Origin: Octopus bimaculoides
Taxonomy: Eukaryota
DNA: 64,000 nt
Assembly (NCBI RefSeq): GCF_001194135.2
Contig: NC_068982.1
Coordinates: forward strand, 128,774,906-128,838,905
Direction of reading: 5' to 3'
Under the pieces are notes generated by a model, which saw only the letters and a list, made by a program, of their open reading frames with translations, made no database searches and was not told the origin of the DNA. Positions within the stretch are counted from its first letter, which is position 1, and each line of letters starts with the position of its first letter. Positions 8,901 to 59,300 of this stretch are shown here, piece by piece. The position numbers and the translations under genes are program-made.

Positions 8901-11900
8901 ATATATTGTAAAGGACTACTTCACACTTCGAGACAAACCCACATAGTTAGTTGAAGCATTGTAATATAACTTTGACTAGTGTATTTGATGTTGAGGTCTT
9001 ATACTTGTTATTTTTTTATATAATTAAAAAATGTCACAAATAAGAAGGAGATTACTGAAGAAAAAAGTTATAAGAAAGAAGGATTCGGTAAAAGTTTAAT
9101 CCTGAATCTGAGAGGTGTGTTGAAGTGAGAATAAGGAGAAATCATCCAGTCAGTTGTTTTAGCACAGATTAAATAACTTGGAAGTGGCATGTAAAAAGCA
9201 CTATTCGAGCATGGTCAATGCCAGTACTGCTTGACTGGCCCCCATGCCAATGGCATGTAAAAAGCACCACTACACTCTCGGAGTGGTTGGTGTTAGGAAG
9301 GGCATCCAGCTGTAGAAACCTTGCCAGATCAGACTGGAGCCTGGTGCAGCCTTTTGGCTTGCCAGTCCTCAATCAAACTGTCCAACTCATGCCAGCATGG
9401 AAAGCAGAGAAGAAGCTTGTGGAATGGAAACTTAGCATTCAGCAATAATTTAAACAAATATGGATTGTATAAGTGGGATATAGATTTTTATCTGTAATAA
9501 TAATTGATGAAGGAAACAGAAGATAGATTTTTATCTGAATATATATCATTTATGTGCACTTGTTTATGTATGTTTGAATACAGTGGACACATTAAATAAA
9601 AATAAGGAATATTCTAATGCACAGTGAATTTGTGCTTCATAAAGTGTTAACAGGAGCTGTTAGATACTAAGTTCTCTTTGTTTCGACAAATGCCAGAATT
9701 GGTCATGTAGAGAATATGAGGTTGAAGAAATTGTGATTCTTGTTGCTGTATGTTATTACTGTTGTACTGAATGAACTTGTAAATAATAAGAGTATAAGGG
9801 AGTTAGTGACAAAGGTGAGATATTTATGCAAGAACAATTCAATTCATAATTTTTGTTACCTTTAACAAGAATTTCAAAATCTGCAGCAGCTTTTCCAACT
9901 GAATTTTCAGCCACAATGGTGTATACTCCACCATCTTTAGTGTCTGCATTTTTAATAGTTACTCGAGAGAATTTTTCTGTTGTTTCGATATTAAGAGAGT
10001 AAGATGTTTCAATCTCTTTTTCATTCAACAACCATTTGATAGTGGGAGTTGGAATACCGGAAACATTAACTAAGATAACTATTGAAGATCCAACCTTGAA
10101 GTTTTGAGTACTTTGCAGACGGTTGTCATATTCAAGCTGTGGATGAGCTGTAAAATAAAGAAATTTTGTATAATAAATAAGAAAATAAGAAATATGATGC
10201 AGTAAAATAATTAAAATGATAATAATAATTTTTTCTGATTTAGGCATAAAGCCAGCAAATTTTAAGTGGAGGGATTTAGTCAAAACCATTGATTGCAGTA
10301 CTTATACTTTATTTTATCAAATCTGAAAGGACGAAAAGTAAAGTTGACCTAGGCAGAAATTGAATCCAGAACATAAAGAGCTGGAAGAAATATTGCAAGG
10401 TATTTTCTAACAATACTCTAACTATTCTATTTTTGTTTTACTACTGGTGAGTTACAGCACATATTGTTTGCAGAAAACATAAAAATGCCACTACTTTGCT
10501 TAAACATTATAAATGTAAAGACATGCTGAAACAGCATTCATAAACACACATACACTAGGCTTCTGCATAATTTCTGGTTACCAATTCCACTCATAAGGGA
10601 TTGATCAGCTATAGACTATAGCAGGAGACACTTGCTCAAGGTATCAAGCAGGACTAAGCCCCAAACCATTTAGCTGTGGATTCAATACAGTCAATATAAA
10701 TAAATTGTATATATGTATACAAATGTATACATTTCAGTCTTTGCTTTCTTTCTGTTTACATGTATACATGTATCTTCACTGAAACATATTATTTGTTACA
10801 TGATGTCAAAATTTGATCATGAAAACTGACCTCGTCACTGACAAGATTACACTACAACTATATTTCACCCATCATCCTCACATCTATTTTGGATATTTGC
10901 ACTTCAACGAAGTATAATGTATTTTATAAAATCATGGATTTACTTACTGTGAATGGTTAGTTTTCCTTTAGTCTCACATTTTCCAAGAGCATTAGAAAAT
11001 TTGCATGAATAGACAGCAGTATCAGATGGTTCGGTTTTATGAATAGTAAGAGTAGCAATACCATCTTCATAATTCATCTCATATTTAGAATTCTTTTTGA
11101 TGGCAGTATCACCTTTAAACCTGTTTAAAGAAAAATTAGTTTTAAATATTTATTAACACAAATGTTTGAAAAATTTTTATTTTTTATTTAAAATTATACC
11201 AAATAATTCTTCTAATATCTAAACAGAATATTTACCATTTTATTTCAGCCTTAGGTTCTCCAAGATCAACAGTACATTCTAATGAAGCATCATTTGGTGA
11301 AACAAATGTGACATCAGTCAAAGGTTCCAGAATTTTGGGTGGTTTTCCAACTGTAAACAAAAATTTACAAGGATTGAATTCATTAATTTGTGTGAATGCC
11401 TTATCTCTCCACACACACACACACACACATATATGCATATATATATATATATATATNNNNNNNNNNNNNNNNNNNNNNNNNNNNNNNNNNNNNNNNNNNN
11501 NNNNNNNNNNNNNNNNNNNNNNNNNNNNNNNNNATATATGTGTGTGTGTGTGTGTATGTATACACACACACACACACACACACACTCTCGTGTCCAGCCC
11601 ATCAAGGTAAGCAGCACTCCTCAGTATGTGTTGACTCTGACCATGGTGATCTATCCAACCCATGCCAGTATGGAAAGTGGATGTAAAACAATAATGATAA
11701 CGATATAAATACACACAGCATATATACAAACATGCTATTGGTGCTGGGAGCTAGCAACATAAAAAAAATATATTTCTATGGCAGCATCAAATGGTAAATA
11801 TCCTCAACATCTGTTTTTATCATTTGGAAAGATAATTGCCCAAGTCTCGAAGTAAGAAATATGTTACATTTCTTGGTGTTAGAGTATCTTTGCTCAATGA

Positions 11901-17900: not shown

Positions 17901-20900
17901 TCACCAGGAATCTTTTCAACGGTTTGATCTTCAAGTTCTTTGATGAATTTGACTTCACCCTCTGTAAAATAATGAAGAATTTGTTACAGACTTATCAGAT
18001 CTTGTTTACTTTGTTTATTTTGCAAAATTAGATTATGAGAAAATGCATCTCTAAGTTTATTGGGGTTATTTTTTATATGGTTTTATATGTGCATGATACA
18101 TACTTTATATGTGCAATACATATAAAATATGTATCATATATGTTTTATATATGTAATACATATTTCCAAATTCTTCTCCAACAAAATATGTATTCTATAA
18201 TTCAATTTACAAATAAAGTTAATGTAAAAATTAGGAGTACCAGGAAAGTGGAAAGGTACTAAATAGCAGTTTGTGGAAACTAATTAAACAATAATAAACC
18301 ACTAGATTGAAATAAAATATTACTTATCATAAAAATAGAAAAATTAATTATGATAGCATATTTATGTCCAATTTCTATATGTAATTATTTACTTATAGAT
18401 TCTTAATCATCCTCTAATAAAACAACAAATACACTATTAGGAATTTTGCATTAGAAACAACATAGAAAATTGTAAGAATGAATCAGCTAAGTTTAACAAT
18501 ACTAAATCAAAAAGAAGTCTCAATCTGTATTTTGAAATGCTTCAACTAAGAGGCATTCTATTTACTTGGCTATGATCTAACCCTTTTGCTATCAACCTGC
18601 CTTTGGTTCTATGACATAAAATTCTTGTTTCAAAATTAAATTATAATCTTCTGGTAGGATTTCATAGTTTATGATCCAAATACTAGCTTAATAATGATAA
18701 AGTTATTTTACTAAATTCTCCAGTATTTTCAAAATTAATTGAAACAAAGGCAGAATATTTCGACAGAAATATAACAATCAAAGGTGTTGTAGAAAAATCA
18801 AACCTAATTAATAAGTTACTGTGACTTACCTTTCACTTTTACAAAAGCTTTTGTGGATTTATTCATTATTTTGAATTCATAATTTGCTTCATCATCAAGC
18901 TGTGCTTTTTGCACAATTAAAGTATGTTTCTTTTCTTCAACTGTGAAGTTGAAATGCGAGTCCTTTTCAATAACTTTTCCTGCTTTCATCCAACAACCAG
19001 TCACATTTGGTTTGGATACCTCGCATACCAAGAGAATGTCATCATTTTCCATAACCTCTTGGTCTTTTAGAGGACTCAAAAATTCTAATGGCTCTTCTGG
19101 AAAATAAAATTGCAATTTATATTTAGAAAGTTTAATGGAAAGTTGTAGTTAATACTTAGTCTATATAGTAGGAATCTAATTTTAATGCTTAAAAATAAAA
19201 ATATAAATTAATAATTTTATTAAACTTATTCAAATATTTATCTTCAGACTAGAAAAAAAAGTCTAGTTGAATTAATAGAATCATAAAGATAATGAACTTG
19301 GTGATAAAATAAATGACAGTATGACAACAAAATAATTCTAAAGCATAATCAAAGTAATTAATAATATAAATCACTAGAAACATGCGTAATATTAAGTTTT
19401 AAGAACTAATGTAGTTCCTAAAGCAAGAGAGAGGGACAAAATTAGAGAGAAGAATGAGTGTGTGTGTGTATGAGGGAGACAGCAAGACAATGTTAGAGAG
19501 GGAAAAGAGTAGAGGGAAGAAGGAATGAGAGAAAAGAGTGAGAAAGGAAAAGACAGGGTAAAAGAGCAACAGAGAGAAAGACTAATTCTATAGATCAATG
19601 TAAGCATAATTCCTTACATTCAATTGATTATTTCATTCCTTTTATTTAGTGTCAAAATAATTATTGAGGAAGTTTATATAATTGAAGAATGGGAATCTCT
19701 AAATATATACCAGCATGCACATCTACCAGAATATTACTAAAACATTGATGATTTTATATTTCAGTCTTAGGATATTCGTGGGATCAGTTGTATTAATAAT
19801 ACACAAGTATATACATTTCCTTATTTTCATTATCTCATAAATTCCATGATTTATAATGAGGATAGCTACATGATAGTTATGAATACAGCTTCTAGAAATT
19901 AACCAAAATCAGATAACAAGAATAAATTTCAATTGACAGGACTAACAAAAATGAATTAAACAACAAATCAGAAATTAAAGAAAAAGAATTGCTGGTACAA
20001 TAACTGCTCTTCTTTACAGACATTTATACCAAACTACTCGGATCATACATTAGTCTATTATAGCATATTATATATTCTATTATATCAGAGTTTATTGATA
20101 TATTTTTATTTTAATACAATAATTATTTGAATTTAATGCTTTCTTGTGTTTTGAGGATTTGGAAGAAAACTTAAAGAAAATTCAGTTGAAAAACAAAGGA
20201 AACTACTTCTGTGTTTAGCGATGATAAAAAAAATCTTTCCTTGAAATATGCCAAATAGGGAACAACTGTGTGTGTGTATATATATATATATNNNNNNNNN
20301 NNNNNNNNNNNNNNNNNNNNNNNNNNNNNNNNNNNNNNNNNNNNNNNNNNNNNNNNNNNNNNNNNNNNNNNNNNNNNNNNNNNNNNNNNNNNNNNNNNNN
20401 NNNNNNNNNNNNNNNNNNNNNNNNNNNNNNNNNNNNNNNNNNNNNNNNNNNNNNNNNNNNNNNNNNNNNNNNNNNNNNNNNNNNNNNNNNNNNNNNNNNN
20501 NNNNNNNNNNNNNNNNNNNNNNNNNNNNNNNNNNNNNNNNNNNNNNNNNNNNNNNNNNNNNNNNNNNNNNNNNNNNNNNNNNNNNNNNNNNNNNNNNNNN
20601 NNNNNNNNNNNNNNNNNNNNNNNNNNNNNNNNNNNNNNNNNNNNNNNNNNNNNNNNNNNNNNNNNNNNNNNNNNNNNNNNNNNNNNNNNNNNNNNNNNNN
20701 NNNNNNNNNNNNNNNNNNNNNNNNNNNNNNNNNNNNNNNNNNNNNNNNNNNNNNNNNNNNNNNNNNNNNNNNNNNNNNNNNNNNNNNNNNNNNNNNNNNN
20801 NNNNNNNNNNNNNNNNNNNNNNNNNNNNNNNNNNNNNNNNNNNNNNNNNNNNNNNNNNNNNNNNNNNNNNNNNNNNNNNNNNNNNNNNNNNNNNNNNNNN

Positions 20901-23900
20901 NNNNNNNNNNNNNNNNNNNNNNNNNNNNNNNNNNNNNNNNNNNNNNNNNNNNNNNNNNNNNNNNNNNNNNNNNNNNNNNNNNNNNNNNNNNNNNNNNNNN
21001 NNNNNNNNNNNNNNNNNNNNNNNNNNNNNNNNNNNNNNNNNNNNNNNNNNNNNNNNNNNNNNNNNNNNNNNNNNNNNNNNNNNNNNNNNNNNNNNNNNNN
21101 NNNNNNNNNNNNNNNNNNNNNNNNNNNNNNNNNNNNNNNNNNNNNNNNNNNNNNNNNNNNNNNNNNNNNNNNNNNNNNNNNNNNNNNNNNNNNNNNNNNN
21201 NNNNNNNNNNNNNNNNNNNNNNNNNNNNNNNNNNNNNNNNNNNNNNNNAAGAATTTGTTAAATCTGAAACTAGTTCCTGTTTAATAATGCTTTTTTAGGT
21301 GATTTTAAATGTCTTGCCCACTCACGTTTTTGGTATGCTGCTATATTTCATGTTGAGAACAATTTAGGTCTTAATAGACACAAGATGTGATCTATTTCTA
21401 GCGCATTAATTGTCCACGTTAGTGGTCGACGTTATTTTTTGAAAAATGTACCTTAATCCCCTGAGATTGCAGATAATATTTCTGAATCTCTTTGATTCTT
21501 TAGATGTGCTGGCCTCCTGATAATTAATCGATATTAATTAATATATGACTAATTACCAGATTTTATAATTATATATCAGTAATATATATATATATATCAG
21601 TAATATATTTAATATATGCTATAGGTTCAAAATTATATTAATAATGGTGATTGACAAGAACACTTTTAGGTAATGATGAGATGAGTAAAGTTAAATATGT
21701 GTATTAACAGTTGTTGAAAATAATACAGTTTAGCTGTATACGTTTAGACAATAATTAAAGTAGTTTATCTTTCTCCTCCTAATTCACATGTAACTAATTA
21801 ACTATACAAATATGAAGAAAAGATATTTCATGAGATGGAATTATGAAACAATGCAATGTGATATTTAAATACAGTGTTAAAATGTTATCAAAATGCATGA
21901 AGGTTAGTATCTACATATTATTTCATTAATAAAGATACTTAATACTAATTATTTCTGAAATTCAAATACAAAACAGTGGAAGTTAATGTAAAAATAACAG
22001 AAAATAATACTTTTGTCAATCCATTGTAAGCCATGTTTGGCATCTTGATTACTGTTTTGGCCATATCCTGCTCTTTGGCCATATTCTGCACTTTGGCCAT
22101 ATTCTGCACTTTGGCCATATTCTGCACTTTGGCCATATCCTGCTCTTTGGCCATATTCTGCACTTTGGCCATATTCTGCACTTTGGCCAATGTAATGATC
22201 ATTAAATTGATCAATTTTAATGTCATGGCTAATATGTTGCTCAACTGCTTGTTTAGCTTTATTGTCAACTGGCCAGTCATCCCCTTGATCAAGTTTATTA
22301 GTATCTTTTAAACTATAGTCTCTTTCATTTGCTTTTCGTATTTTCCGATCTAATTTGTCGTCTAGATTTTCACCATCTCTTAAAATAGCTTTATTACCAG
22401 ATTCAAAATATTCTTTAGGTCTTCCTTCAGAACTCAAGTGATAACTAGCTTTGCTACCTTCTATTTGATAAAAATCAGATTCTGTAACATCATTAGCTTT
22501 ATGACAAATCCTAGTTTTATTTGATTTAAGTTTATGATCAACCTCATCTGAATCAATATTCAGCATTTCATTCTCTTCAGATCTTCTAACAAAATCACAA
22601 GGAGCATCAACATTTCTACTTGTATCTTTTGAGAGTTCTGACAGACCTGTTTGGTTGATGTCAAGATGGTCTTTTTTATTGTAACCTTTAGACATCTTTT
22701 GATCAACCAAATTAGTAACTTGATCAATTTCAGGGATGACCTTTTTGTCAACATCCTGATCAAAGTTCTGGTCAGTTGTGAGACTAATTTCTCTATCTGT
22801 AGCATTTGCAATTTCAGCCTCAGAACTGGCCTTTTGATCAGAGTCTTTCTTGACTTTGAATCTGATCTTTTGGTCAACTTCTCTACTAATTTTTTGTTGA
22901 GCCTCAAGATTAGACTCCAAGTCAGTGGATTTGCTTATTTGTTGATCAACGTGATAGCCACTATGATTTAGATCAAACTCATTGACATTATCTTTGCTAT
23001 GGCCTTTCCTTTGTTGAATATCATCTTTAACTGGATAGTCAATATTTTGGTGCCTATTATGGCCAACATCTTGACCATCTTCTGAAAAAATAACAATTGA
23101 TATTTGTGGCAAAGTGATTTGTATTTCTTTGTATGTTGCTGTGTTTAGAAAATAAAACTGGTAAGAAATAAACTAATGAAGCAATGATCAACAAAAAATA
23201 TGATTAGAGTTTAAATAATTTGAAGAAAACCAAATAAAATTATAATCCTCAATTGCAAGAGCGTGTGAGTGAAAGACATCTTTCATTATCTGTTACTGGT
23301 TTCAGTCAGTAAGCTGATACCATAACGGGGTACTAAAACCCTTGAAGAGTTTTAGTCAATCAAATTGACCTCAGTACTTGTTTTTTTTTTTTTTTTAAGT
23401 CTGGTATTTATTCTGTCAGTCTCCTTTTCTGAACCACTAATTTACAGGGATGTAAGTAAACCAACACTGGTTATCAAGAGGTGGGAAGGTCAAACACAGA
23501 CAGAAAACACTGATATACACACATACATATGTATGTATACATATATATGATGGGCTTCCATATAGTTTCTGTCTATAAAATTTCCACAGCATTGGTTGGC
23601 CTGGGGCTAAGGCAGAAGACAATTGCCCAAGGTGTTGTGCAATGAGACTGAAGTTGATACTATAAGACTGCAAAGCAAGCTTCCTATCACACAGCCATGC
23701 CTGTTGCACCTGATATCAAAGATATTGGATTTTTGCATTTGTTCAGCAAGGTTCTTGATACTCGTTACCCAACCAATGTAAATCTAAATTAAACTGCACA
23801 TAGTTTAATTTCAAAAATATTTAAAGAAAATTAAACTAATTAAATTGCTGATATTACAAATGTTATTCACAAATTATAACATTATTTTAAGGTGTGTTGA

Positions 23901-29900: not shown

Positions 29901-32126
29901 TGCTATTGTGTTGATAAAAGCACAAAGAAAAGAAAATAGTTCTTTGAAATATCTTAATACTTTAAAGAGAACAAAGGGAACATTGATTTATCTCTGTCAT
30001 ATAAACTATTGATATTAAAATCATAAATGATATATACTGCAAAATAACTGAACAGAAAGAAATGATTTCAGAAAAAGCTAAGGCAGATTTATGAGTGGTT
30101 TTCTTAAGCTTAAATTTATCATCAGGTATGAGGAAAACAGAAATACCTCAGCTTTATCAAAATATATATATATATGTGGATACAGAATGTACAGAACTTA
30201 AGACACATTTAGTGAATGCTTAATTAGTGAGAAAACCTTGTGTTACACAATCAGAAGTTGTGCTAACTCTGTTCAGTTGAAAAATATATCTTGATGCAGC
30301 ATTTAAATATATTAAATGTATTAATTGGAAATCATAATGAAATACTATTGTGAAAACAAATTCTAATCGATGATTTATAATAATGAGACAAAGCCCTCAC
30401 TAATATTCCAGAGAAATACAATAATATAAGGTCACTTAATACGACACTTTTTCTAAAGAAAACTTTCTCTGTTAAAATGCTATATGAAGGATGCCTGGTT
30501 GATGAAAACTTTAATGTCTACTCCTGTATCTATTGAATACTCTTTGCTTTGATCAATACGCAAAATAAATGTATGTGGGAAAAGTCACATCAAATGTTAA
30601 GACCTAAATGATTGTAATATGTCAAACACAATACATATGTAAAATGCAAAAGCATAATTCAAGCTAAAATATATTAGAGCAATATAATTTTTCCATCTTT
30701 AAAGTATCAACAAATGCCATATTTATAAATTTCATTTTGATGTTTGCAAAACTATTTTAATACCTAGTTTTCATAAAGAAAAGTAAATCTTGATAGCTAA
30801 ATATGTTTTGCGAAGAATTGAATGAGCTAAATAAATGTTTATTTAAAAATTGTTTTACTATACTTTCTTTATTTATTCGGATATAAAAATAGAAATATAA
30901 GTTATTTACATCATCATTAACTTTAATATTTTACTTCTCATATCCATATAATGATATTTTTGTAGAACATGTAAGAGCTATAGTGAAAACTAAAACAGTA
31001 GTGATTTTAACAAATACATAAGCCAAATCAATTCAGTAAATTTTAATTTACTATAAATCACAATTAATTGTGAAGTAAAAGCAAGAAAATCATAAAATGT
31101 CATTTAACGTCCGTTGTCAATGCTGGCATGAGTTGGACAATTTGACTGGGCTGGCACGATGGAAGGCTGTGCCAGGATCCAGTCTGATTTGGCCTGGTTT
31201 TATATGGTTGGACACCCTTCCTACTGCCAACTACTCTGAGAGTGTAATGGGTGTTTTTACATGCCACCAGCACCGGTGCCAGATGCATGACACCAGTATC
31301 TGCCATGGCTGGGATTTTGCTTGGCTTGATGAGTCTTCTTCTCAAGCATGACATAAAGCCAAAGGTCTTGGTCATTGCCTCCATGAGGCCCAACACTTGA
31401 AAGGACCTTGGCCACTTTGCCTCCATGAGACCCAATGCTCAAAAGGAACTCAGCCACCTCACCTCCATGAGGACCACTCAAAAGGAACTCAATTACCTTG
31501 CTTCCCAACACTCAAAAGGAACTCAGCCACTTTGCCTCCATGAGGCCCAAAGCTTGAAAGGAACTCAGGCACCTCATTTCTGTGAGGCCCATTAATTTAA
31601 GAAATACCTTTGTAGTAGATAATTATTAAATAATGTGGATAAACATTTTCATCACTGTCATAGTATTACTAAATTAAAATAAAAATTTAATAACATACAT
31701 TGTAACTAACTTTAAGGACAATGTAATTGCTTGATATTGAATGTATTGAATATGAAATTATATCGTTGCTATTATGCAAAAGTATCATAAGTCCAAAACG
31801 TTGCTTTTTCAGAAAATGAAAAAATAGTTTTACCATTCCATTTCTTTTTATATTAGCAACTGTTTCAGCTTACAATAATACTTCATTGGGTGCATAAAAG
31901 TGTAATTCCATGCATGTCTGATATTTTCAGTCAGAAATATTTTTGCAAAACTGTCATATGTGGGATTTACTACATGTTTAAAAAATACTAAACTGTTGCA
32001 CTACACTTTGACAATTTTCGTATCTTGGCATCTGAAGCAGCTGGAGATACGATAGTTTGACCAAAAGAACTTGCTATTGCAAGAAAAATTAAATATTGAA
32101 CATACAAGTTTAACATAATAGCAACG

Positions 32127-35387: not shown

Positions 35388-38229
35388 TGTGTGTGTGAGT
35401 GTGTGTGTATATAATATATATGTGGAGGGGCAATATGGCCCAGTGGTTAGGGCAGCAGACTAATGGTCATAGGACTGTGGTTTCAATTCCCAGGCCGGTT
35501 ATTGTGAGTGTTTATTGAGTGAGAATACCTAAATCTCTCACTCTTTCTTCCTGTTTCTGCTGTACCTATATTTCAAAGGGCCAGACTTGTCACACTCTAT
35601 TTCACGCTGAATCTCCCCAAGAACTACATTAAGGGTACACATGTCTGTGGAGTGCTCAGCCACTTACATGTTAATTTCACAAGCAGGCCGTTCTGTTGAT
35701 CTGTTCAACTGGAACTCCCGTCATCGTAACCAATGGAGTGGCACATATATATATACTCACACACACAAACATTTTTGTTTATCAAATCTATGAATAAGCA
35801 AATACATATAATGAGCACTTATCTTTTGTTTGTGTACCCATACATGAACACAAACACAGACATACAAATACACACACAGATTCCCAAACTCACATCATAC
35901 AAATGTGTGTGTGTGTGTATGTGTGTTCAAAGTCATATTACAGTTTAGTTCAAACTATATTACAGTGAATGACCCAATTCTTTGGATAAGACATATTTCT
36001 ACAGCAGAGTAGCTGGCTATAAAAAATGAATACAATCGAAAAATATATATTTCAAAATCTCATGTATCTACACCTGCTTTAAAATATGATTATATATTAA
36101 GTCAACTTGAATTGAGAAAGATAAGTAATTTAAATATCTCTACTTACGTTCTACGGACAATTTGGCTTCAGTCTTAATACTGCCATAGGCGCAAGACACA
36201 GCACCTTCATCTTTTGGACGGCATTTGGAAATAACCATAGTATGAACTTTTCCATTAGCTTTGAAGTTATATTTAGGACTAGCCTCAATTTCTTCATCAT
36301 GTATTTTCCAAGACACAATTACATCAGCAACAAATAGTTCGCATTCGAATGTTGCGCATTCTCGTTCTTTTACTTCCACATTTTCTAATGGTCTCACCCA
36401 TTTCCACTGAATTTGAAATAAATATGTAAATGCAATCACAATGTTTGATAAGAATATCAATTTCAATCATCACACCAATAAATTATAATAATACATAATA
36501 AAAGATTGAACAATTTTTACACTTATGTTACTCATCTATCTAACATTATTTTCTTCCAAATAGAATTAATTTATAATCAAACATTTTTTTCTACACCTTC
36601 AAACCTTTATAGCATTATTCATTACTTTATAAGAAACATGGTTTTCATAATTTATGGAAAATCTCCCAGAGGAAATAAGTAAAACGTGTATGAATTTGAT
36701 GAAGTTCTTGTATGTTTTAGATATTTTACATTTATGATAATGGTAAGAAAGTTTCAAATATTGCTAATATTTTTGATGTTTCCACTAAAAAATTCTCAAT
36801 TACTCTTTCTAACAAATTTATCATTTTTCTCACCGTTTTCTTGACAGTCTTGAAACCACCCTCTTCTATGGTAGCAGCATCTTTTTCTTTTGGTTTCTTT
36901 GCATATTTGTCTTCAGGTTTCTTTTTATCTTTCTCTTTTTCATCCTTTCCAGGTTTCTTATCTACTTTAGCTAACTCAATGTCTTCACGTTTTTCAATAT
37001 CATATGTTTTGTCTTTGAATTCATCCAACTAAAAACAAAAATACATAAACATAATGAAAATAAAAGCGTAAAAACATGTATTTAAAATTTAAATCTTAAA
37101 ATTAAAATGTAAAAACCTTAATCATAATATTAACATCTTGTTATTATAAACAAAAAATAACATCCAGAAACTAAATAATCATTTCAATATTAATTTCAAA
37201 GATAATATTTTAATGGGCTTAATGATATTTTATACTTTGATATCACCTTGATATTATAAAATTTAACTATGTATGTAGTATTAAATATGCTTCATTTATA
37301 TACTGATTTTTAGAGTTAGCACATCTAACAAAAAATATAAATAGACATCCTTCAATAAATAAAATACAATCTTCACTCAGTAAGATATATAAAAATTCTA
37401 CTTACTTCAGGCATATCTCTCTTCTTTAGATCATATGTTACTTCATCTGCTTCAATTTCCATAGTACGTTTGGTGGTATCAGTTTTAGTCAGCTCTTGTT
37501 CTTCCAGTTCAACCTTACGAAGGTTAATATCAAAGCCAGCATCTTCTTCAATTTCTCGTTCTTCTTGCTCCCTACATAAAACAGGTTTTAATATTATAAA
37601 TTTTTATGAAATATTTATTCTCTATGCTAGTTAGTTTCTATGATCATCAAACTTAATTCTATAAATGTTTTTCTCAGATTCAGTAATAAATTTTGAATTT
37701 TTAATGATTATGTAAATAAATAAATAAATATGTGTGTGTGTGTGTGTGTGTGTGTTAAATGAAATAAGATAACAAAGCCAAGGCCATGTGGAATTTTTAG
37801 GACATTCATAAAGAGAAAGTTAGTCTTACAGCTGTTTCTGGGATATTAGGGATATCCCTTTATCAGAGATGATATGAGAGAGTTAAATAGAGGGAAATAG
37901 TAGAGTTCAATATAAGGAATTATTTTGGTAAAAGATAGATATAGGAAGTATAAAGGGAAATAAGAGAATAAAAGTAAAAATATATGTAGGATGTTACAGT
38001 TGCAATTCCATTGTCCAAGGAAAGTGCTGTATAGAAAGTGCTGTGTAAAATTCCACACAGCCTTGATTTTGTTGTCTCATTTTATTTAGCATATACATGC
38101 TCACACAAGACCCACATTAAGCTCCTCATTCGTATTACTATCAAACCAAGAGTCTAACTACGGTCCTTCCGTAGCACTTACATAGCCTTACCTGCCATCT
38201 TGGGTCTTCTGGATACCAATACCTCTTAT

Positions 38230-38313
<84 letters not shown>

Positions 38314-41300
38314 ATAAATAGATAGATAGATAGATAAATACATGTATGTATATATGCATATAGATGCATGTATGTGTGTGGGGGCATGTGTGTAAATGTA
38401 CATGCACAGAGCAGTTCTATTTCCTATTATGAAAGAAAAACCATACAAAGAAATAAATATTTACAGCTTCAATAATTTTACCTGTGTTTTAAGCCGGCCT
38501 TCCAATCTGTTTCCTCCTCTTCCTTGTCTGTTACAATAAGAGTTGCTGGTGCAGATTCTGTTCCATGCTCATTGGTTAATGTTACAGTGTAAGTACCTGC
38601 ATCTCCAGTTTTGGTTTTTTCCATCTTCATAACCTCTTCTCCTGTTTTTTCATCATAATAGATTTTAATACGTCCACCATCTTGAAGTTTCATCCATTTT
38701 CCTTTAGACCACTCAATTGTTGGTTTAGGTTCACCAGCAATCTTGCAACGGAATTCTGTGGTACCATCTTAAATTAAGAAATTTATAGAATATAAAATAT
38801 ACATGTAATTCTAAAGTAGAAACAGTTGTAATAAATTTGAATTTATGAGAATAAATATTTGCCTTTTCTTCGTTTTAATCAATAAATTTATTTCAAATAC
38901 AAATAAGGTTTCTCTTTACTAATATGTAAACAGTTGTCTAACTTCTCTACAACAAGAAACATGTTCTTCCCTGATCCTTTCTTTCATACTTTTACCTCTT
39001 ATCTGCAAGCATATGGGTTTATTGTCTTGCAAAATGCATGATGACCTCACTAGGTTTGGTTGCATGAAAGAAGCACCCAGTGTACATTGTGAAATAGTTG
39101 GCATTAGGAAGGCATCCAGCCATAGAAACCATGCCAAAGAAGACACTGTTCTTGAGCCCATCAAATCCTGTCAAACTGTTCAACCCTTCCCAGCATGAAA
39201 CATTGATATTAAATGATGTTAATAATGATTACCTTCCAAAATTGTACATTTCTGAGGTACTTCAATGAACTCTGGTGCTCTGCCTCTAATATCAATCTTG
39301 GCTTCAGCAGAAGCATCTCCTCCTCTATTGGTTGCAACAGCTTTCAGTTTTCCTTTCAATTCAGGGCTAGCTTTATCAATGGTAAGAGTATATTCATCTT
39401 TCTTTGGAGAATCAAAATGAATAATGTCACTTTCTTTGAGTTCCATATCATTGATGTACCTAAAGATAACATAATTATACATTAGTACCATAAAAAATAA
39501 ATGAATAAATGAAGAGAATGCTTTTATTTAAAAATATATTTTCATGCAAAACTTGATAACAAATACATTTATATAAATTCTAAAATGGTTAGAAATATTT
39601 TCAAATATATTATATACTAACCAAGTAACAGTAGGCGATGGTTGTCCACTGACTTTACATTCAAATGTAACTGAACCATTTTCAGGTACCAATTTATCAA
39701 CTGGTTTCTTGACAAAGGATGGCTTCTTAACAGCTGTTAATATAAATTTATTATATAGAAATAATTGACAAAATTATACTAAAGTAATGTATACTTTTTC
39801 AAAACTAAATCACAGCCAAAAGAGCAACTATATATGCAGAAAAGAAACAGTTATACAGAATACAATGTATTGTAAAAGTAAACCATAATCTGAACATATA
39901 TTCAGATATTTATTTAATGATTCAATAATCTTTTAAACTGAATGTCTTTTAGTTACTATTGTTTTTGATAAACTATTGTTTTGGTGTTAAAGTTAAGTTT
40001 TTCCTCAAACCTAAAATAATTTGAATTTGAAAAATATGCCAACTCCACAAATTAAGCAAGATATGTTCAGATATTCTCTTCTTTATTCACATTATCTTTA
40101 TTCATTAGGCAACATGTTAAGTTTTGTATTACTTGATACAAGGAAATCTTCCAAAATATTATAAAATCAAAAAACAAAATCTTACGGATAACTTTCAAAC
40201 GGCCATTACAAGCCATTTGACCAGCAGAATTTACAGCTCGAGCAGTAAACAGTCCGGCATCATCTGTAGAAACATACTTAAATTGCAATGTATGCTTATC
40301 ATCTTCAACCAAAAACTTTATGTTGTCATCTTCAGTCAATTCTTTATTGCCTTTGAGCCTTTAATGTAAGAAAACATCATAAATATTAAAATTTTACATT
40401 AAGCCAATGAAAATAAAATTTTAATTTGACATTTAGATAATAATTATTATTTTAAATTTCTAATTACAAATAAATTGTTTATTTGTTGAATGATAATATG
40501 TACCTGTAATACATTCTAATGGCAACTAAAATGTACAAAATTCTTCAGGAAGTAGAAAGGAAAAATTATAAAGTTAATTCTAACTCGGAATACACTGCCT
40601 CTGTTTCAATTAATTTTGAAAATAAGGAAACATTTAGCAAAATATTTTTGGCGTTATTAAGCAGGTGTCTGGGATCCAAATTAACATAAAATTTTGATGC
40701 AATATTTTAACTTAGATCACTTTAAAACAGGAAGTTTGTATCATATAACAGTCAGTCTCAGGTGGATTTAGTTATCAAGGGGGTTAAAGTGTTATTTAAA
40801 TATTGATTTCTAAAATTAGAACAAGTCTACAAATTTGGAGGAGATACAAGCAACTAAAACAACCCTAGCATTTAACTGGAACTCTTGCATTTGAATATTA
40901 AAACAGAAACATGTTATGCCAATTGATATCTGTAGCATGAACAATATAATTCATCAGCAATAAGGATTTCTAACTTTGGCATTAAGTTACAAATTCTGAG
41001 TTAGTGATGAAGCCATTGTAATCAACTTCAATGGTGGGAGAGAGAAAGGCAATGTGGATTGCAAAAGAATGTGAACTTGGAATATAAAAGGATTAGAATC
41101 ACATCGTCAAGGCATATAAAACTGGTGACATACTGGTCTTGTCTCTCCACTACAAATTTTATGTTTTACTTGTTTCAGTCATTAGACGGTAGCCATGCTG
41201 GGGCACTACCTTGAATGGTTTTAGTCAACCAAATCAACTGCAGTACTTATGCTTTTTTAAAGTCTCGTACTTATTCTATTAATTTCCTTAGCTGAACTTC

Positions 41301-44300: not shown

Positions 44301-47300
44301 TATTTAATGATATCAGCTTCAATATCGAAATCAAATGGAAATTGTAGCTGTGAACCCCGTGCCAGTGGCATGTAAAAAGCACCATCCAAACGTGGCCAAT
44401 ACCAGTTCCTCTGGCCCCTGTGTCTGTGGCACATAAAAAGCACCCACTACACTCTCGGAGTGGTTGGCATTAGGAAGGGCATCCAGCTGTAGAAACACTG
44501 CCAGATCAGATTGGGGCCTGGTGCAGCCTCCTGGCTTTCCAGACCCCAGTCAAACCATCCAACCCATGCCAGCATGGAAAATTGACGTTAAACAATGATG
44601 CTGATGCTGATAATGATGATGTAAAAGCTTAATAACCATTCTAATAATAAAGTTGCTTGATTTTTCATAGTATTAATGTTTGAAGCCTTTTAATTTTACT
44701 ATTCCTCATTGTCACTAAAGAACAGAGCTAAATTTATTCAAATCGGTTGCCACTTGTATAAAAAATACAAATTTCAGAAATAATGTAATATCAAATATTG
44801 ATACTCATGAAGCAATTATAATGAATGGATGTTTTTTCACTTACTTTCAAAATCTACATAGCAATGATATTCTCATTGCTCATGTAGTAAATGAAATTAA
44901 AGTGAAATTTATTAATCTATAACTGAATGCTTCCTTTATATTCTGATGTGTTATTTCATATAATATGATAGGATGATTAAGAGAAAAAGATTTCCAAAAC
45001 AAACAAAAATATATCTTACAGTAGATTCTGTGACATCTTCAAACTTAGGTGGAATTTTAGCTTTTTCAACTGGTTCCTTCTTCTCATCTTTTGGTTTTTC
45101 TAAAATAATGATATGATACAGATATTATTATCATTATTAAATGATAATAAAGTTTCACGATTTGTCATAGTTTGAATCACTTTAATTCTAATGCATATTT
45201 TTAAATCTCAGAATTAAGTTTTAAGCAAATTTTCACTTACATTTGAAATATGAAAAACCAAATTGAATTTACTTTTATCATACAACACATGAATCTATAA
45301 CTTATTAAACAACAATATATTCTATAGGATTTAAAAAGAGAAATTAAACTAGTAGATGTTATGGGGAAACATAATTGTCATCATTGTCATAACCATTGCA
45401 AAAAATTAAAAATAATAAACTTTTGAGAGTTAATGTTTGTTCTCCATCTTTTATATAATTGGTATATTACTAATTTTTATTATTCTTATTTACTCTACTA
45501 ATCAAAATGATAAATGTATGCTAAGGATATCCCAAATACTGTTTATCAACTTACTACTAATTTATTATCTCAGTCTTTTGTTAATTTATTTATTTATTTT
45601 ACTGAAGGTTAGTGTTATTTTACAATTAAAGGCAAGTTTCTACAATAACTTTGAAATTATTGGATTCATCCCTAATTTACATCAAAGAATTCTTTATACC
45701 TGTCTTTCAACTTGTTATTTGTTATCTTTCACTAACCAAAACATTCAATGCACTGCTATGATTCAGCACATTTTTTTCGCAGTTTTTTTTCTATTCATTC
45801 ATTTCCATCAACTTTTAATATGAGGAGTGAAAGGTTAATAATCACAATGGTTATGATTTCAATAATTCTACTCTAGATCATGAAGTAAATAACTATAAAA
45901 CTTAGATAAATAGGAAGAGAAGAAAAATGTTTTGTCAAAGATAGATTTGTATATCATGGGTATTGTTCTCATCTCCCTATGATATAGACAGTTATCTGAA
46001 TTTCCCCCTAAAAAGATAACCATTAATTTCCTTGGACTGAGGTGTTTATTTTTATTTAAAGAACACTATTCATGCTCAAAACTCCTCAGGCATATGAATT
46101 TCTAGGAATCTGAAAACTAAAAGCTTATTGTCTTTGTTAAATAGACAACTGAATAAAATACCAATAAAGTTGTTATTGTTTTTTAAACGCAACTTTAATT
46201 TTGGAAATAATATAACATCATCCCTTTAGTAATAATCCTACACTACATGTACTATGCATAAGATCTCTAAAGTTATTATGCAATGTAAGTATGTTCTAGA
46301 CTTTGATAGTATTGGTAATTTTGAATCTTTGTTTACTCAAATATCGTCATAGAACACATTTCTAAACCATTTAAAATGCAAAAAGTGATTCTGAAAGGGA
46401 ACAGATCATTATTAACAACAATTTTGACAAGATTAAGATTTGAGGGATTTCTACTGACCTTCAAGTGAAACGGTGGCTTCACATTCTGCAGAACCAGCAG
46501 GATTTGTGGCAACACATTTGTAAACACCAACTTCATTCTTGGAGAATTTGCTGGTTTTTAGTACACATACAGGGCCATCTTGTGTGAGCTTGGTAAGTGA
46601 TGTTGGTTTAATTTCTTTGTTGTCTTTAAACCACTTAATAGTAGGTTTTGGTTCACCAGTTACCTTGCATTTCAGTTCCAAAACGTCATTAGGTTTAAGG
46701 GATACTGATTGGAAGATCTCTTCAAATTCTGGTTTCTTTTGCTCTGGCTTCTTTTCTTTTGGTTTTTCTTCCTCAAGTGTTATAGTAGCTTCACACTCAG
46801 CAGATCCAGCAGGGTTTGTAGCAACACATTTGTAAACACCAACATCATTCTTTGTGCATTTACTGGTTTTTAATATGCACACTTGGCCGTCTTGAGTAAG
46901 TTTGGTAATAGATGTTGGCTTAATTTCTTTGTTATCTTTAAACCACTTGATGGTAGGTTTCGGTTCACCAGTTACCTTACATTTCAATTCCAAAATGTCG
47001 TTCACCTTGATGGTTGTTGAACTGAAGATCTCTTCAAATACAGGTTTCTTCTGCTCTGGTTTCTTTTCTTCTGGTTTCTTTTCCTCTGGTTTCTTTTCTG
47101 CTGGTTTTTCTTCTTCAAGTGAAACAGGAGCTTCACATTCAGCAGATCCAGCAGGGTTTGTTGCAACACATTTGTAAAGACCAATATCTGTCTTTGAAAT
47201 CTTTGGTATTTTCAGAGTGCACTGTTGCCCATCTTGAGTTATAACACTCTTAGATGTGTTTCTTATTTCTTTGCCATCCCTGATTATGAAACAAATAAAA

Positions 47301-50300
47301 ATTAGATTAATAAAAATTTATCAGTACAAACTTATCATAGGACTAATAAGCTCATAAAAAGCAGCAAGCAAGTGCTATAAGAAAGCACTGTGTATACTGT
47401 TGAGTGGTTGGCATTAGGAAACGCATCCAGCCATAGAAACCAAGCCAAAACAGACATTGGAGCATGATGCAGTCCTCCAACCTGTCAGATCCTGTCAAAC
47501 CATCCATCCAATGTCAGCAACAGACATTAAGTGATGATGATGATGGTGGCAGTGGTGAGTAAATAGGTGTTAAAAGGGTTACATATACTTACTTGAACCA
47601 TTTCACAGTAGGCTTAGGTTCACCAGTAACTTTGCTTTCCAACACTAACTCTTCATTAACCTTCAGCACCTGAATCGTTAAAAGAAATTATTGATATTTA
47701 TAAATTATTTTGAAGAAATTGTTAGAATGCTTTCTTCTAATTAACTACTAGACTAATTGATAGTAGACATAATCACTAATTTGTGACAGAAAAGATCAAT
47801 GGTGCCATTGATGTAATTGTTGTTCTTTTCTGCTTTAAGTTGCTGCTCCTAATGTCTAATATAATTTGTACTGAAACGTTTCAGCAGGTAATTAATAGGT
47901 TCAAGTTGGAAGATATATATTCTAAAAAAAGTGGATAACAACAGATATTTTAAGACATAATTATACTACAATTATTTTAATTGATATATATATTGACAGA
48001 AACTATTAATTGAAATATATGTTAACATTTTAACTTAGTGTTAAAATTGCCAATATAATGGATACTTACGGAAGGTTGAATGACTTCTTCGAATTCTGGT
48101 TTTACTTCTGTTAAGATTGAAAATAGAAGTTTAATTACATATTATTATTCCATTTTTTCATAATTTAACTTAAGCAAATCTAAAAGCTAATTGAATTTAA
48201 CATATAAAATTTAAATAGTAGATTACATTCAAGCTTATAAACCTTCTTTAAACCAGGAAACACTTTATAACTCTGGATATGTAAAATGTAATAAAGAAAC
48301 ATCATTTTTGTGTACATATATAATTGATACTAAGAACACAAATAATGTTCTTAATTATAATTTTATTTGAATTTTTTGAAACATTTATTCTACTCTCTTT
48401 GAGCCAAAAATTTTCTATCTTGTGCAACATATTTAAGATGGAATCTATGTAATATGCAAGATAAATCATGATATGACATATTCAATTAAAACCATATAAT
48501 TATAGTACATGTTACTGTATTGTTTAACTCCAGGTCAGCCCCAATTAATCAGGCCTATGATTAAAGACAATCCAGCATCAAGAAATTTTTTGTTGGGGGT
48601 AGGCAGTAGACTACATTATTCAATGTAATTTTCTTTAAGACAGTAGGATTTAAATTGAGGGATATTTGGCTGCTATTCCCAGCAAGATGAGCAATCACAC
48701 GAAGTTCCCTTATTGGCTTGCAATGTACTACTATTTTTTATAAATAGTATGGAATATGTGAAATATAATAATATTAATATAATACCAATATGATACTACA
48801 GACCTGCATTTCTAGAATATGGCCACATATACTCTCAAGCCTTATTCTGTAGTATATAATTGAAAATAAAACTTCAAATAAAATACAGCAAGATGTAATC
48901 ATTACAGTATATTGTAACTTACCATAGATATTAACAGGTGCTTCACATTCTGCTGAACCAGCGGAATTAGTTGCAACACATTTGTATACACCACTATCAG
49001 GTTTTGCAAATTTTAGTATTTTCAAAATGCAAACATCTTCCTCTGTTGAGATTTTATATTTGGAAGAAGTCTTTATTTCTTTGCCATCCCTATAAATAAA
49101 AATAAAGCCATTATATGAAAATATGTTATATTTCTTGTAGATTATGTTTGTATCATATATTAATTAAATCTGCATTTTTTATCACTAGGAAGCTGAAAAC
49201 TTCAATGGTAAAATAATTTATCATTCTTCCTTATACTCGTAAATTTTGTTTCATGCATTACAACTGATAAAGGTATATTAAATAAATAAACATGTGATTT
49301 TATACATATCTTATATAAATGATGTACCTTTTGTTTTACAACCGTTGTTCAAAACTAATAACCATTTCTAACAATTTTGATTTAAAGATTTGTTTTTTCA
49401 TAGACTAGTCAGGGAAAGAACGTTAACGACTATGACTTTTACAAGCCTTCCATGGCTGGTCACATTTATGTGGTTGATTTATCTCTTCAGTAAAATTATT
49501 GCTGGGATAATAATTTTAGAGAGCTGAGATTCTGGGCATGATGCAGAGGACAAAGTGTTTTGTATAAGTCCTAGAAAGTGATATACATTAAGGCTGATAA
49601 GAAGAATAATGAGAAGGTGGAGAGGCTATGCAGATAGCTTGTTTAGAAGAATGTATAGGATGTTTGTGTGCAGTAGCCTCACAGTCTCATGCATATGAGC
49701 AATACTCTGCTGTAGGTCTTAGTTGAGCCTTGAAGAGTATGAGTGATTAATCAGGGCTGAAACATTTTCTGACCCTAAAAAAGAAACTGATTCTTTATGA
49801 CACAATTCTGGCAAAGCTTATATGTGGGTTTACTATGAATGATGATCAGGGACTGTGAAGCTTAGCACTTGAAACAACTTTGTAAATTTTGTAAAAGATT
49901 GTTCATAATTAATAAGAGTGAAAAATAAACTTGTTTCCTGTTATGCATGACAGAGATGAATATAGTTACACCTTTCTATAGCCCTTATACATTTGGGACT
50001 CTTATATTGAATTATCTTACTCCTGTTTTTGTACTTATTAAAGCATGTAAAAACTATAAACGTTGTTGACTTACTTGAACCATTTCACTGTAGGTTTGGG
50101 TTCACCAGTTACTTTACATCTCATTTCTACCTCTTCATCAGCTTTCTTTGTCTAAATTTCAAGCAAATATAAATTCCATGTATTATAAAATTCATAATAT
50201 TAGTAGAATACAACAAATGTTAAAAAAATTACTGAAATAATGTATTCCTTAAAGAAATTTAAATATAAATGCAAATAAGAATTATTTCAGTGAAACTCTT

Positions 50301-56300: not shown

Positions 56301-59300
56301 ATTTTTGATGCTCTGAAATGAAAATTAAAAATCAATGAATAAGCGTCTAACTATAAAAAGCAAAACTCAGATTTTACCAACATGTAAAAAAAATAATAAA
56401 AGGAAAAAAAAATTCATGATTCGGAATGAAATACTTACAGTTGGTTGAAGAACTTCTACAAATTCAGGTTTCTTCTGTTCTGGTTTGGCTTCCTTTGGTT
56501 TGTCTTCCCCAAGTGTGATAGTAGCTTCGCATTCAACTGAACCAGTGGAATTTGTAGCAACACACTTATAAACACCGACATCATTCTTAGTGAATTTAGT
56601 TGTTTTTAATACACATATAGTACCATCTTGAGTGATTTTGGTAAGTGTTGTTGGCTTAATTTCTTTGTTGTCTTTAAACCACTTAATGGTAGGCTTTGGT
56701 TCGCCTGTTACCTTACATTTCAGTTCCAATGGTTCATTCAATTTGATAGTGGCTGATGTGAAGATTTCTTCAAATTCAGGTTTGCGTGTCTTAGGCTTTT
56801 CTTCCTCAAGTGTAATAGTAGCTTCGCATTCAACTGAACCAGTGGAATTTGTAGCAATACACTTGTAAACACCCACATCATTCTTAGTGAATTTACTGGT
56901 TTTTAGAGTACATATAGTGCCATCTTGAGCAATCTTGGTAAGTGATGTTGGCTTAATTTCTTTGTTGTCTTTAAACCACTTAATGGTAGGCTTTGGTTCG
57001 CCTGTTACCTTACATTTCAGTTCCAATGGTTCATTCAATTTGATATTGGCTGATGTGAAGATTTCTTCAAATTCAGGTTTGCGTTCCTTAGGCTTTTCTT
57101 CATCAAGTGTTATTGTTGCTTCACATTCAACAGAACCAGTGGAGTTTGTAGCAATACACTTGTAAACACCCACATCATTCTTAGTGAATTTGTTAGTTTT
57201 CAGAGTGTATACTGAGCCATCTTGAATAATTTTGGTGAGAGAGGTTTGTTTGATTTCCTTGTTGTCTTTAAACCACTTAATGGTAGGCTTTGGTTCACCT
57301 GTTACCTTACATTTCAGTTCCAATGGTTCGTTCAATTTGATATTGGCTGATGTAAAGATTTCTTCAAATTCAGGTTTGCGTTCCTTAGGCTTTTCTTCAT
57401 CAAGTGTAATAGTAGCTTCGCATTCAACAGAACCAGCAGTGTTTGTGACAACACACTTGTAAACACCAACATCATTCTTTGTGAATTTATTGGTTTTTAA
57501 AGTACACACTTCACCATCTTGAATAATTTTGGTAAGTGTGGTTGGCCTGATTTCTTTTCCATTCCTAAAAAAATATATAATTTTCTTGTATAACTACATA
57601 AACTATAATTTTCTTACATAACTACATAAGATATAGGAATATAAAGACTATATATCTATAATAAATATTAATTTATTTCAAATGGTAAGCAAATGAGTTT
57701 TGTTTTCCCATTATTAAATTTTTAAGAGAATATATGTCAATTCTAATATAATTATTAGTCATTTTCTCAGGGCTATTCATCACTGAGGAGGCTAAATCAG
57801 GCCAAAACACCAATGTCTGATGATCCCCTGATGTCATTTTTAAGACTCAAATTCCCTTAAGAGAAGTTTCTCTGAAACAAAATATTACAGCTAGAACTGT
57901 TCTATACTTGTATAAACACAGTAACTGTCACACACACCATTATTTTAATCTAATGCTGTTTCAAGTGTGTATATTTAATTTAAACTTGTCCAGCTTCAGC
58001 ACAAATCAATAACTGTTTTGTTTCTGATTTCTATATTGGAACTGGCATCTGATGATTTGCTGATAAGGAGTCTCTCTAAGATAGCTAGTGCCATTCTCTT
58101 TTTCTATGCACATTTTGTTATACATATAGTTATTTTAATTTAATACTGTTTCAAGTATGTATGCTGAGAGAAGTTATAGCCTTAAAACAATTATCAGGTT
58201 TTATGAAACTTTGAATGATGAAACTGGACTAGATTACAAACAGAAGACTTTTATAACCAAATGTATTCATAGGGTCGGAATGAAAATACATTTTAAGAAA
58301 AAACATGAATGACAACAGACACTAACCATGAAAATAAATTATAAGTTGATTATATTTGAAGAAAAAACCTTCCTATTTCATTCATTATCATAATTCTCTT
58401 TAAATAAGTGTTGGTTGTGTTTATTCTTTATATCTTAATATTTCTATTCTTTCAAGTCAGAATTGAGATTGAAACTTTAATTTAAATTCTTGTAAAAAGC
58501 TACATTAATAAGATGATACTCACTTAAACCACTTGACAGTTGGCTTTGGTTCACCACTGAATTTGCACTTCAATTCCATACTGTCACTAACTTTGAAAGA
58601 CTAAAAAAAAAAATAGACATAATATATAAATACAAATATAACATAATGATAATACAATAAATATAATCAATAAAGAAATTATTAAATTGTGAAGAAGTTT
58701 TAAAATGTTTATAATGTTACTTACGGCTGAGTTAAATACCTCTTCAAGGACTGGTTTCTTCTTTAGGTCCTTTTTCTCTGTAAATTTACAAAGTGTATAA
58801 GTGTGAGAAAGCAATTGCAAAGCTATGAAAGAAATTAACATCAAATTGTTCATCATAAAATACAGAAAATTTATAATAATGGAAGTTTTTGCTGCTTCCC
58901 AATTCAGAGTCAAACAAAAGCATTCATACTTGTTTGGAAATAGATGAAACATACCTGTGACTTTGACTTTACATGAAGTTGAAGACGAACCAACATTGTT
59001 AGTTGCTTTACATGTATATTCAGCAGTGTCTTGTTTTGTAACTTTATGGATGGTCATTGTATGAGTGGTTTCAGAACTTTCAATTGTGAAATGTTCAGAT
59101 GGTTTAATTTGAACACCATTTTTGTACCTAGAAAGAAAGATGTTTAAACAGTTAATTTTTGTACGGGGTTATGAGTATCCACATTACTAAAAATATTATT
59201 AACATGAATGATTAAAGAATAAAAATGAAAACAAGAAAATATTTCACATTTATTTTACAATTTGAAATGCTTTATACAAAATCACCAACATAACAATTAA

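Follow-up and report, generated by a model that had tools for sequence, protein, structure and literature searches.

Does a protostome muscle gene carry a homolog of the N2A signalling hub of vertebrate titin? The question is raised by a 64-kb stretch of Octopus bimaculoides DNA (contig NC_068982.1; the whole stretch is called the window). A reading made from the letters alone, here the sequence-only reading, had marked positions 38482-39260 as an immunoglobulin (Ig) domain bearing the WSKGKW, GGR and NEHG signature of titin domain I80 and of domain C1 of the myosin-binding protein MyBP-C, had noted a unique insert behind it, and had proposed a hub homolog. Titin N2A and the C1-M part of MyBP-C are disease-relevant regulatory sites, and N2A is discussed as a vertebrate feature. 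Our analysis favors a different answer, to which we give a probability of roughly 0.6: the flagged stretch would be an ancient cassette shared by titin, MyBP-C and twitchin/projectin, in which an Ig domain is joined to motifs resembling DFRxxL, the motif by which MLCK (myosin light chain kinase) binds F-actin (PMC2196421). It would be not a conserved N2A hub but a putative docking point for thin filaments, or a hinge.

The KGKW Ig domain and its charged insert

Coordinates are positions within the window, and the gene is read on the minus strand, toward lower numbers. With 29% G+C the window is AT-rich; it contains many microsatellites and is clearly eukaryotic; one giant muscle gene of Ig and fibronectin type 3 (Fn3) domains spans all of it. 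The parts around the flagged domain are:

39229-39459, minus strand: upstream exon, encoding the preceding Ig's C-terminal half and strands A/A' of the KGKW Ig
38482-38767, minus strand: main KGKW Ig exon (exon A), encoding strands B-G (from DGTTEFRCK) and the post-domain tail
38718-38747, minus strand: ten-residue peptide of the KGKW Ig quoted by the sequence-only reading
38694-38711, minus strand: WSKGKW, the C-strand signature, as in titin I80 (W[TM]KGKW) and MyBP-C C1 (WFKGKW)
38562-38573, minus strand: NEHG, the F-G turn (NxxG), with the same letters in turtle titin I80
38511-38534, minus strand: VTDKEEEE, tail region
38484-38507, minus strand: DWKAGLKH, the DFRxxL-like motif directly after the last Ig strand
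38481-38501, minus strand: KAGLKHR, tail
37406-37571, minus strand: insert exon B, acidic linker and second motif FDINLRKVE (37508-37534), flanked by canonical ag/gt and in phase with exon A
36834-37028, minus strand: insert exon C, E/K/P-rich and PEVK-like, loosely conserved in L001 and P0159
36148-36406, minus strand: first Ig after the insert (exon D), of the I-band/obscurin type

The originally marked span consists of the last 32 nt of the upstream exon, a 461-nt intron and exon A. The upstream exon ends in a phase 1 donor (GAA G/gtaatc at 39229), and exon A is bordered by the acceptor tttaag/AT and the donor CACAG/gtaaaa. The intron behind exon A lies in phase 2, within the codon next to LKH; in L001 it comes after LKK. 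Spliced together, the two exons encode a single complete I-set Ig (Pfam PF07679, E=9.2e-19, profile positions 1-90 of 90). The domain is real, and all quoted peptides, with WSKGKW, GGR and NEHG among them, were located there on the minus strand. Five other sequences share the domain at 46-63% identity; in them a 15-letter peptide and the D[WL]K..LK tail vary little or not at all. KGKW is present in every ortholog of the window gene, and conservation in orthologs P0001-4, P0159 and locus L001 extends over the Ig, its tail and the first part of the insert. Likewise, the upstream exon is collinear with P0002 and P0159. In L001 (positions 10001-11040 of an ENA ERZ25069296 contig, 40% G+C) the preceding Ig and the KGKW Ig lie in a single exon.

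We examined how widely the signature occurs in a survey set of 500 sequences (0.72 million residues), in which a profile of the KGKW domain had more than 3000 Ig matches. W-x-KGK[W/F] was limited to orthologs of the window gene, vertebrate I80, cardiac MyBP-C C1, P0042/P0196 and amphioxus P0150. Vertebrate N2A fragments were retrieved with an N2A query sequence, with matches up to 96-100% identity, and a MyBP-C query was likewise verified against PDB 8G4L. The human I80 sequence that the sequence-only reading had given was borne out by real titin fragments of turtle (P0010) and fish, which carry KGKW, GGR, NEHG and a D[LF]RxxLKK tail (EGDLRAKLK). The KGKW stated for C1 was confirmed in PDB chains of slow, fast and cardiac MyBP-C, the cardiac one reading VVKWFKGKWVDL.

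The protein search seemingly covered proteins of up to ~8000 residues; domains from the representative library, which is ranked by summed Ig score, were re-scored locally. With the window domain as phmmer query, complete I80 domains scored 55-58 bits, another titin Ig 52, an Ig from a lamprey protein whose architecture resembles MLCK 49.5, and the best single domain in PDB, Robo1 Ig3, 39.8. When turtle I80 was run against the window, the KGKW exon came out best (61 bits, 36% identity over 91 residues), and the next Ig scored 48 bits. By these scores I80 is the best vertebrate match found among titin fragments and PDB chains, with a narrow margin of a few bits. The whole-domain similarity of MyBP-C C1 is weak (34 bits). 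In the whole-domain PDB search the sole MyBP-C match lay at the C10 position (residues 1179-1262), not at C1, which surfaced only when the KGKW core served as query.

The closest non-orthologs of the window domain are P0196 (77 bits) and amphioxus P0150 (XP_078700411, 65 bits), both with the three-helix motif of N2A and the M-domain right after a KGK[W/F] Ig. P0196/P0042 come from a transcript catalogue of marine eukaryotes and from an ENA contig; in them and in P0150 the order is a low-complexity linker, the KGK[W/F] Ig, the full three-helix motif and a further Ig. We regard these proteins as candidates for the invertebrate equivalent of MyBP-C C1-M-C2 or of titin I80-UN2A-I81.

The unique insert that had been announced after the domain is there: a charged, non-Ig stretch of 120 residues, encoded by exons B and C, precedes the next Ig exon. 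Both exons have canonical splice sites and matching phases, and exon B is conserved in L001 and P0159. The whole insert is 57% charged and contains zero serine, and therefore lacks the serines that protein kinase A (PKA) phosphorylates in MyBP-C and twitchin. In P0159, a cDNA-like ortholog, the tail continues straight into PEVK-like sequence.

The stretch behind the Ig fold

Beyond the last Ig strand, the window gene, twitchins, titin and MyBP-C are collinear by alignment. The window's DWKAGLKH has as counterparts DLRAMLKK in titin, DFRSLLKH and DFRAMLKK in twitchins and DFSSLLKK in MyBP-C, and in each case a spacer and a second motif follow:

window: DWKAGLKHR, 12 residues, FDINLRKVE
ortholog P0159: DLKSQLKKR, EHTQFKKQDDDAP, FQVNLKKVE
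hemichordate twitchin-like protein: DFRSLLKHR, EFKRRSSKDEG, PDWGKLKHIE
mosquito twitchin: DFRAMLKKR, KYAKWGNQEKD, PDWGDLKEVE
turtle titin: DLRAKLKST, 12 residues, a 10-residue second motif
cardiac MyBP-C: DFSSLLKKR, DSFRTPRDSKLEAPAEE, DVWEILRQ

In a MAFFT alignment the window extension matches, with modest support, the UN2A start, whose order is D[LF]RxxLKK, acidic residues and IDI.ELL. The first ~30 post-domain residues are collinear with this start and with part of the M-domain, and are closer to the linkers of mosquito, acanthocephalan, crinoid and hemichordate twitchin-like proteins. In L001 the exon after the Ig completes three D-x-x-x-x-L-K motifs (DWAKSLKK, LDWGKLKK and LDIKLKKV), the second of the same type as twitchin PDWGKLK.

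We built an extension profile from seven invertebrate extensions and no titin or MyBP-C sequence. Scores of its own members are circular and give the scale only; the L001 extension in it lacked 12 residues (AVEEEELDWGKL), and the profile was kept as built. On this scale the members P0073, P0081 and P0053, all twitchin-like, reached 65-72 bits. Exon B of the window insert reached 40 bits, which is not independent evidence because the window's own sequence is one of the seven members. The independent matches all fell at the expected positions: vertebrate I80 tails scored 10-16 bits (the best 15.8, with an independent E-value of 3e-4; range to 3e-3) and the MyBP-C M-domain 10.9 bits (independent E-value 0.01).

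A motif of the DFRxxL-like type occurs once in the six frames of the window. In echinoderm MLCK-like proteins, too, an Ig is followed by one to several motifs of this type. The arrangement recalls smooth-muscle MLCK, in which short D-aromatic-basic-x-x-L motifs stand directly after an Ig domain; unlike DFRxxL of MLCK, the window motif has W/K in place of F/R (D-W-K-A-G-L; orthologs D-[WL]-K-x-x-L).

From these comparisons we propose a cassette in which an I-set Ig bearing W-x-KGKW, GGR and N-x-HG leads at once into a series of one to three D-hydrophobic-[R/K]-x-x-L-K motifs that a charged linker spaces. Other versions of it would be the I80 domain of titin together with the disordered UN2A start, the C1 domain of MyBP-C together with the M-domain, and the twitchin/projectin junction Ig together with its linker; the window copy would combine the KGKW signature of I80 and C1 with a twitchin-like extension. 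Common descent of these cassettes is, in our judgement, likely. A docking role is suggested because the motifs resemble DFRxxL of MLCK and because some I80-containing titin N2A constructs, the M-domain and twitchin contact thin filaments; we infer that thin-filament docking, or a hinge, is the most likely function. In the window gene the cassette sits at the junction between the spring segment and the Ig and Ig/Fn3 part, and would act constitutively, free of phosphorylation control.

The I80/C1 Ig and the first part of the linker belong to a cassette also found in invertebrate giant muscle proteins, twitchin/projectin included, and the three-helix core is confined to some lineages: vertebrate titin, MyBP-C, the amphioxus protein and one marine eukaryote. 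The old part, possibly serving thin-filament docking, can thereby be told apart from a signalling part restricted to certain lineages. For the debated relation of vertebrate titin to projectin/twitchin and Sls-type proteins (PMC12198301), the cassette offers a positional marker. Already known are the similarity of the UN2A three-helix bundle to the MyBP-C bundle (PMC7093598, PMC11687307) and the regulated linker in twitchin. In the searchable literature we found neither the I80/C1-type Ig and DFRxxL-like tail described as one cassette with twitchin/projectin and a further invertebrate giant gene, nor a link of DFRxxL motifs with titin, twitchin or MyBP-C.

Several points weigh against a shared cassette with a docking role. 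The extension matches titin modestly and over a short stretch, and the window motifs DWKAGL and DINLRK depart from strict DFRxxL. The vertebrate ranking covers titin fragments and PDB chains rather than full-length titin. A vertebrate I80-core profile gives the window domain 59.4 bits, yet unrelated Igs reach 57-60. In a neighbor-joining tree built on 81 columns of the Ig core with 200 bootstraps, the ortholog group has 93% support and the I80 group 100%, and no deeper join, such as that of the window clade with I80 or twitchin, is supported. The domain is of the I80 type by its best vertebrate match found and by the group-specific motif; the Ig core alone is not exclusive, and its tree favors neither placement. 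A single-sequence AlphaFold model with a helix over residues 100-153 was set aside, its mean pLDDT (predicted local distance difference test score) of 49.7 being too low to count. Actin binding is reported for the titin N2A constructs I80-I83 and I80-I81 but not for I80-I82 (PMC8553726), and actin binding by N2A is itself disputed in the literature.

Alternative explanations

A bolder version of the cassette is tentative, and we rate it somewhat short of even odds: the whole cassette, with its phospho-regulated or charged linker and first helix, would be one ancient bilaterian docking switch for thin filaments, from which I80-UN2A, C1-M and the twitchin D1 linker arose, with the window gene as an intermediate. 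If true, the middle of vertebrate I-band titin would be connected with the N-terminal junction of proteins of the twitchin/projectin kind, which would bear on which invertebrate giant protein corresponds to titin. The MyBP-C branch of this comparison has likenesses and differences. The C1 stretch of MyBP-C is of the WFKGKW type, and DFSSLLKKR...EEDVWEILR of the M-domain aligns with DWKAGLKHR and the following residues of the window; the rest of C1 is divergent and the host protein is a different one. The window insert contains no serine and gave no three-helix match, and has nothing equivalent to the M-domain's PKA serines and three-helix bundle.

Could the gene simply be a twitchin/projectin, and the domain its standard junction Ig before a D1-type linker? 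We consider this unlikely, although part of the evidence favors it. An equivalent Ig and extension, at a junction behind which come a series of Igs and, after these, Fn3 repeats, are found in Anopheles 'twitchin', in twitchin-like proteins of Ptychodera and Anneissia and in two acanthocephalan proteins; in the Anopheles protein, whose architecture is of the projectin type, the cassette Ig is the first Ig after the PEVK region and after a 282-residue gap. These Igs carry KG..L.DGGR (..KG...L.DGGRY..) and N.[HN]G, and are followed by D[FL]R..LK[KH]R, a linker of 10-14 residues and a D-W/I-..-L-K-.-[VI]-E motif. Their spacing also agrees, DFRSLLKHR + 11 + PDWGKLKHIE against DWKAGLKHR + 12 + FDINLRKVE in the window, and the twitchin extensions, as profile members, score far above the titin tails. 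LDWGKLKK of L001 is of the twitchin type. Furthermore, the order of PEVK-like part, cassette Ig, further Igs and Fn3 region is identical in projectin, and in twitchin/projectin as in the window gene the cassette lies between a spring part and the Ig run toward the Fn3 region.

By the sequence-only reading's own terms, an equivalent KGKW domain standard in twitchin/projectin and grouping with this one would speak against it. This partly holds, because these proteins carry an equivalent domain with the best-matching extension; KGKW itself is shared with I80 and C1, not with twitchins. The literal motif is absent from all six twitchin-like proteins seen and present in every ortholog of the window gene. 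The linker of the window gene lacks PKA-type sites, ~11 Igs precede its first Fn3 region whereas twitchins have five or six, and its apparent (Fn3)3-(Ig)2 pattern, found in none of the scanned fetched proteins of at least 900 residues, differs from the (Fn3)2-Ig (FFI) core repeats that the twitchin-like proteins show and that were not seen in the window gene. A C-terminal MLCK-type kinase domain, as in twitchin/projectin, would be encoded at the gene's 3' end, which lies beyond the window.

In Mytilus twitchin the PKA site of the D1 linker lies between Ig7 and Ig8 (PMC12040844). In three twitchin-like proteins we observed PKA-type sites (RRRSS, RKNS, KRRSS, RRES) between both extension motifs: P0148 (Pomphorhynchus) 515-590, P0073 1471-1500 and P0081 997-1030. 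Their position is comparable to that of Ser302 of cardiac MyBP-C (KKRDSF), which suggests a shared phospho-switch position. The D1 peptide, which probably resembles RRPSLVDVIPDWPTL, would match the acanthocephalan RKNSLSNVIPNWPSLRK.

That the locus is a true homolog of the N2A hub, its insert recruiting ankyrin-repeat proteins of the MARP family and calpain as in vertebrates, is very improbable. Some likenesses to the hub are real: an I80-type Ig with KGKW, GGR and NEHG, a collinear tail of D[LF]RxxLKK, ~12 charged residues and [IF]DI..L.K.V, and unique sequence after the Ig in the spring region of a giant muscle protein. In vertebrates, MARP binding has been mapped to the UN2A-I81 region, which includes the three-helix core, and the calpain-3 site in titin lies at I82-I83; calpain-3 is also reported to associate with I80-N2Aus. 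The UN2A three-helix core had no match in the six frames of the window or of L001, by regular expression, relaxed tblastn or a 26-sequence core profile (best E 1.1, at unrelated coordinates). Because this core is missing and the linker contains no serine, we do not regard the stretch as a conserved hub. In addition, the PEVK-like modules lie N-terminal to the cassette in the window gene but C-terminal to it in titin, and the charged, serine-free insert is unlike that of titin.

The first Ig after the insert offers one further likeness to N2A. Among the first 195 fetched proteins its top match was a fragment whose matching part corresponds to titin I83 (62.8 bits), and it has ATFECE, SPKYNF and DEG in common with I83-type titin fragments. 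In the reverse search it scored 55.8 bits against 51.6 for the next Ig, a margin of ~4 bits, and in the neighbor-joining tree it groups weakly with I81 (54% bootstrap). The I83 likeness is absent from L001; because of this and of the small margin we treat it as a lead only. Downstream of the insert we recognized no equivalents of I81 or I82 and no clear I81-I83 block.

It is just as improbable that this is a generic I-set Ig whose KGKW, GGR and NEHG arose by chance or convergence: the core alone is not separable from unrelated Igs, forms no supported clade with I80 and finds Robo Ig3 and titin I65-70 as its top single domains in PDB rather than C1 or N2A domains, but three separate signature positions agree, the motif occurs nowhere else among the Ig matches surveyed, the tail, linker and second motif outside the fold are collinear and were found by an independent profile, and the closest non-orthologs pair KGK[W/F] with the three-helix motif.

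Layout of the gene and other observations in the window

From its N-terminal-most part onward, the gene is arranged as follows:

57593-46454, minus strand: Ig and PEVK-like modules, N-terminal-most part, partly 297-bp tandem repeats within long exons
43185-39222, minus strand: about four plain Igs, of which the first is seen as a C-terminal half-exon only
36406-17194, minus strand: about 11 single-exon Igs of the titin I-band/obscurin type, downstream of the KGKW Ig and insert
17613-194, minus strand: Ig/Fn3 part in apparent Fn3-Fn3-Fn3-Ig-Ig units, in which small exons may be missed

The Fn3-Fn3-Fn3-Ig-Ig units also differ from the 7- or 11-domain super-repeats of chordate titin. A search with Fn3 sequence of the gene returned no match above ~53% identity. 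In the spring region, the 297-bp tandem units (56466-57557 and 46461-47317, minus strand) each comprise one Ig and a PEVK-like linker and are 78-89% identical within and between the two blocks, which suggests recent duplication or concerted evolution of spring modules. Between Ig exons lies a stop-free stretch of 407 codons (21952-23172, minus strand), rich in D, K, Q and S and with repeats at its end, which could be a second large unique-sequence exon of the gene or non-coding. It adjoins an assembly gap, the N run at 20292-21248; another gap within the gene, at 11457-11533, has CA/TA microsatellites on both flanks. An Rfam scan of the window returned no RNA family. Copies of a ~220-bp element, 77-84% identical and resembling a short interspersed nuclear element, lie in introns at 9183-9403, 44364-44580, 31117-31283 (inverted) and 47402-47519.

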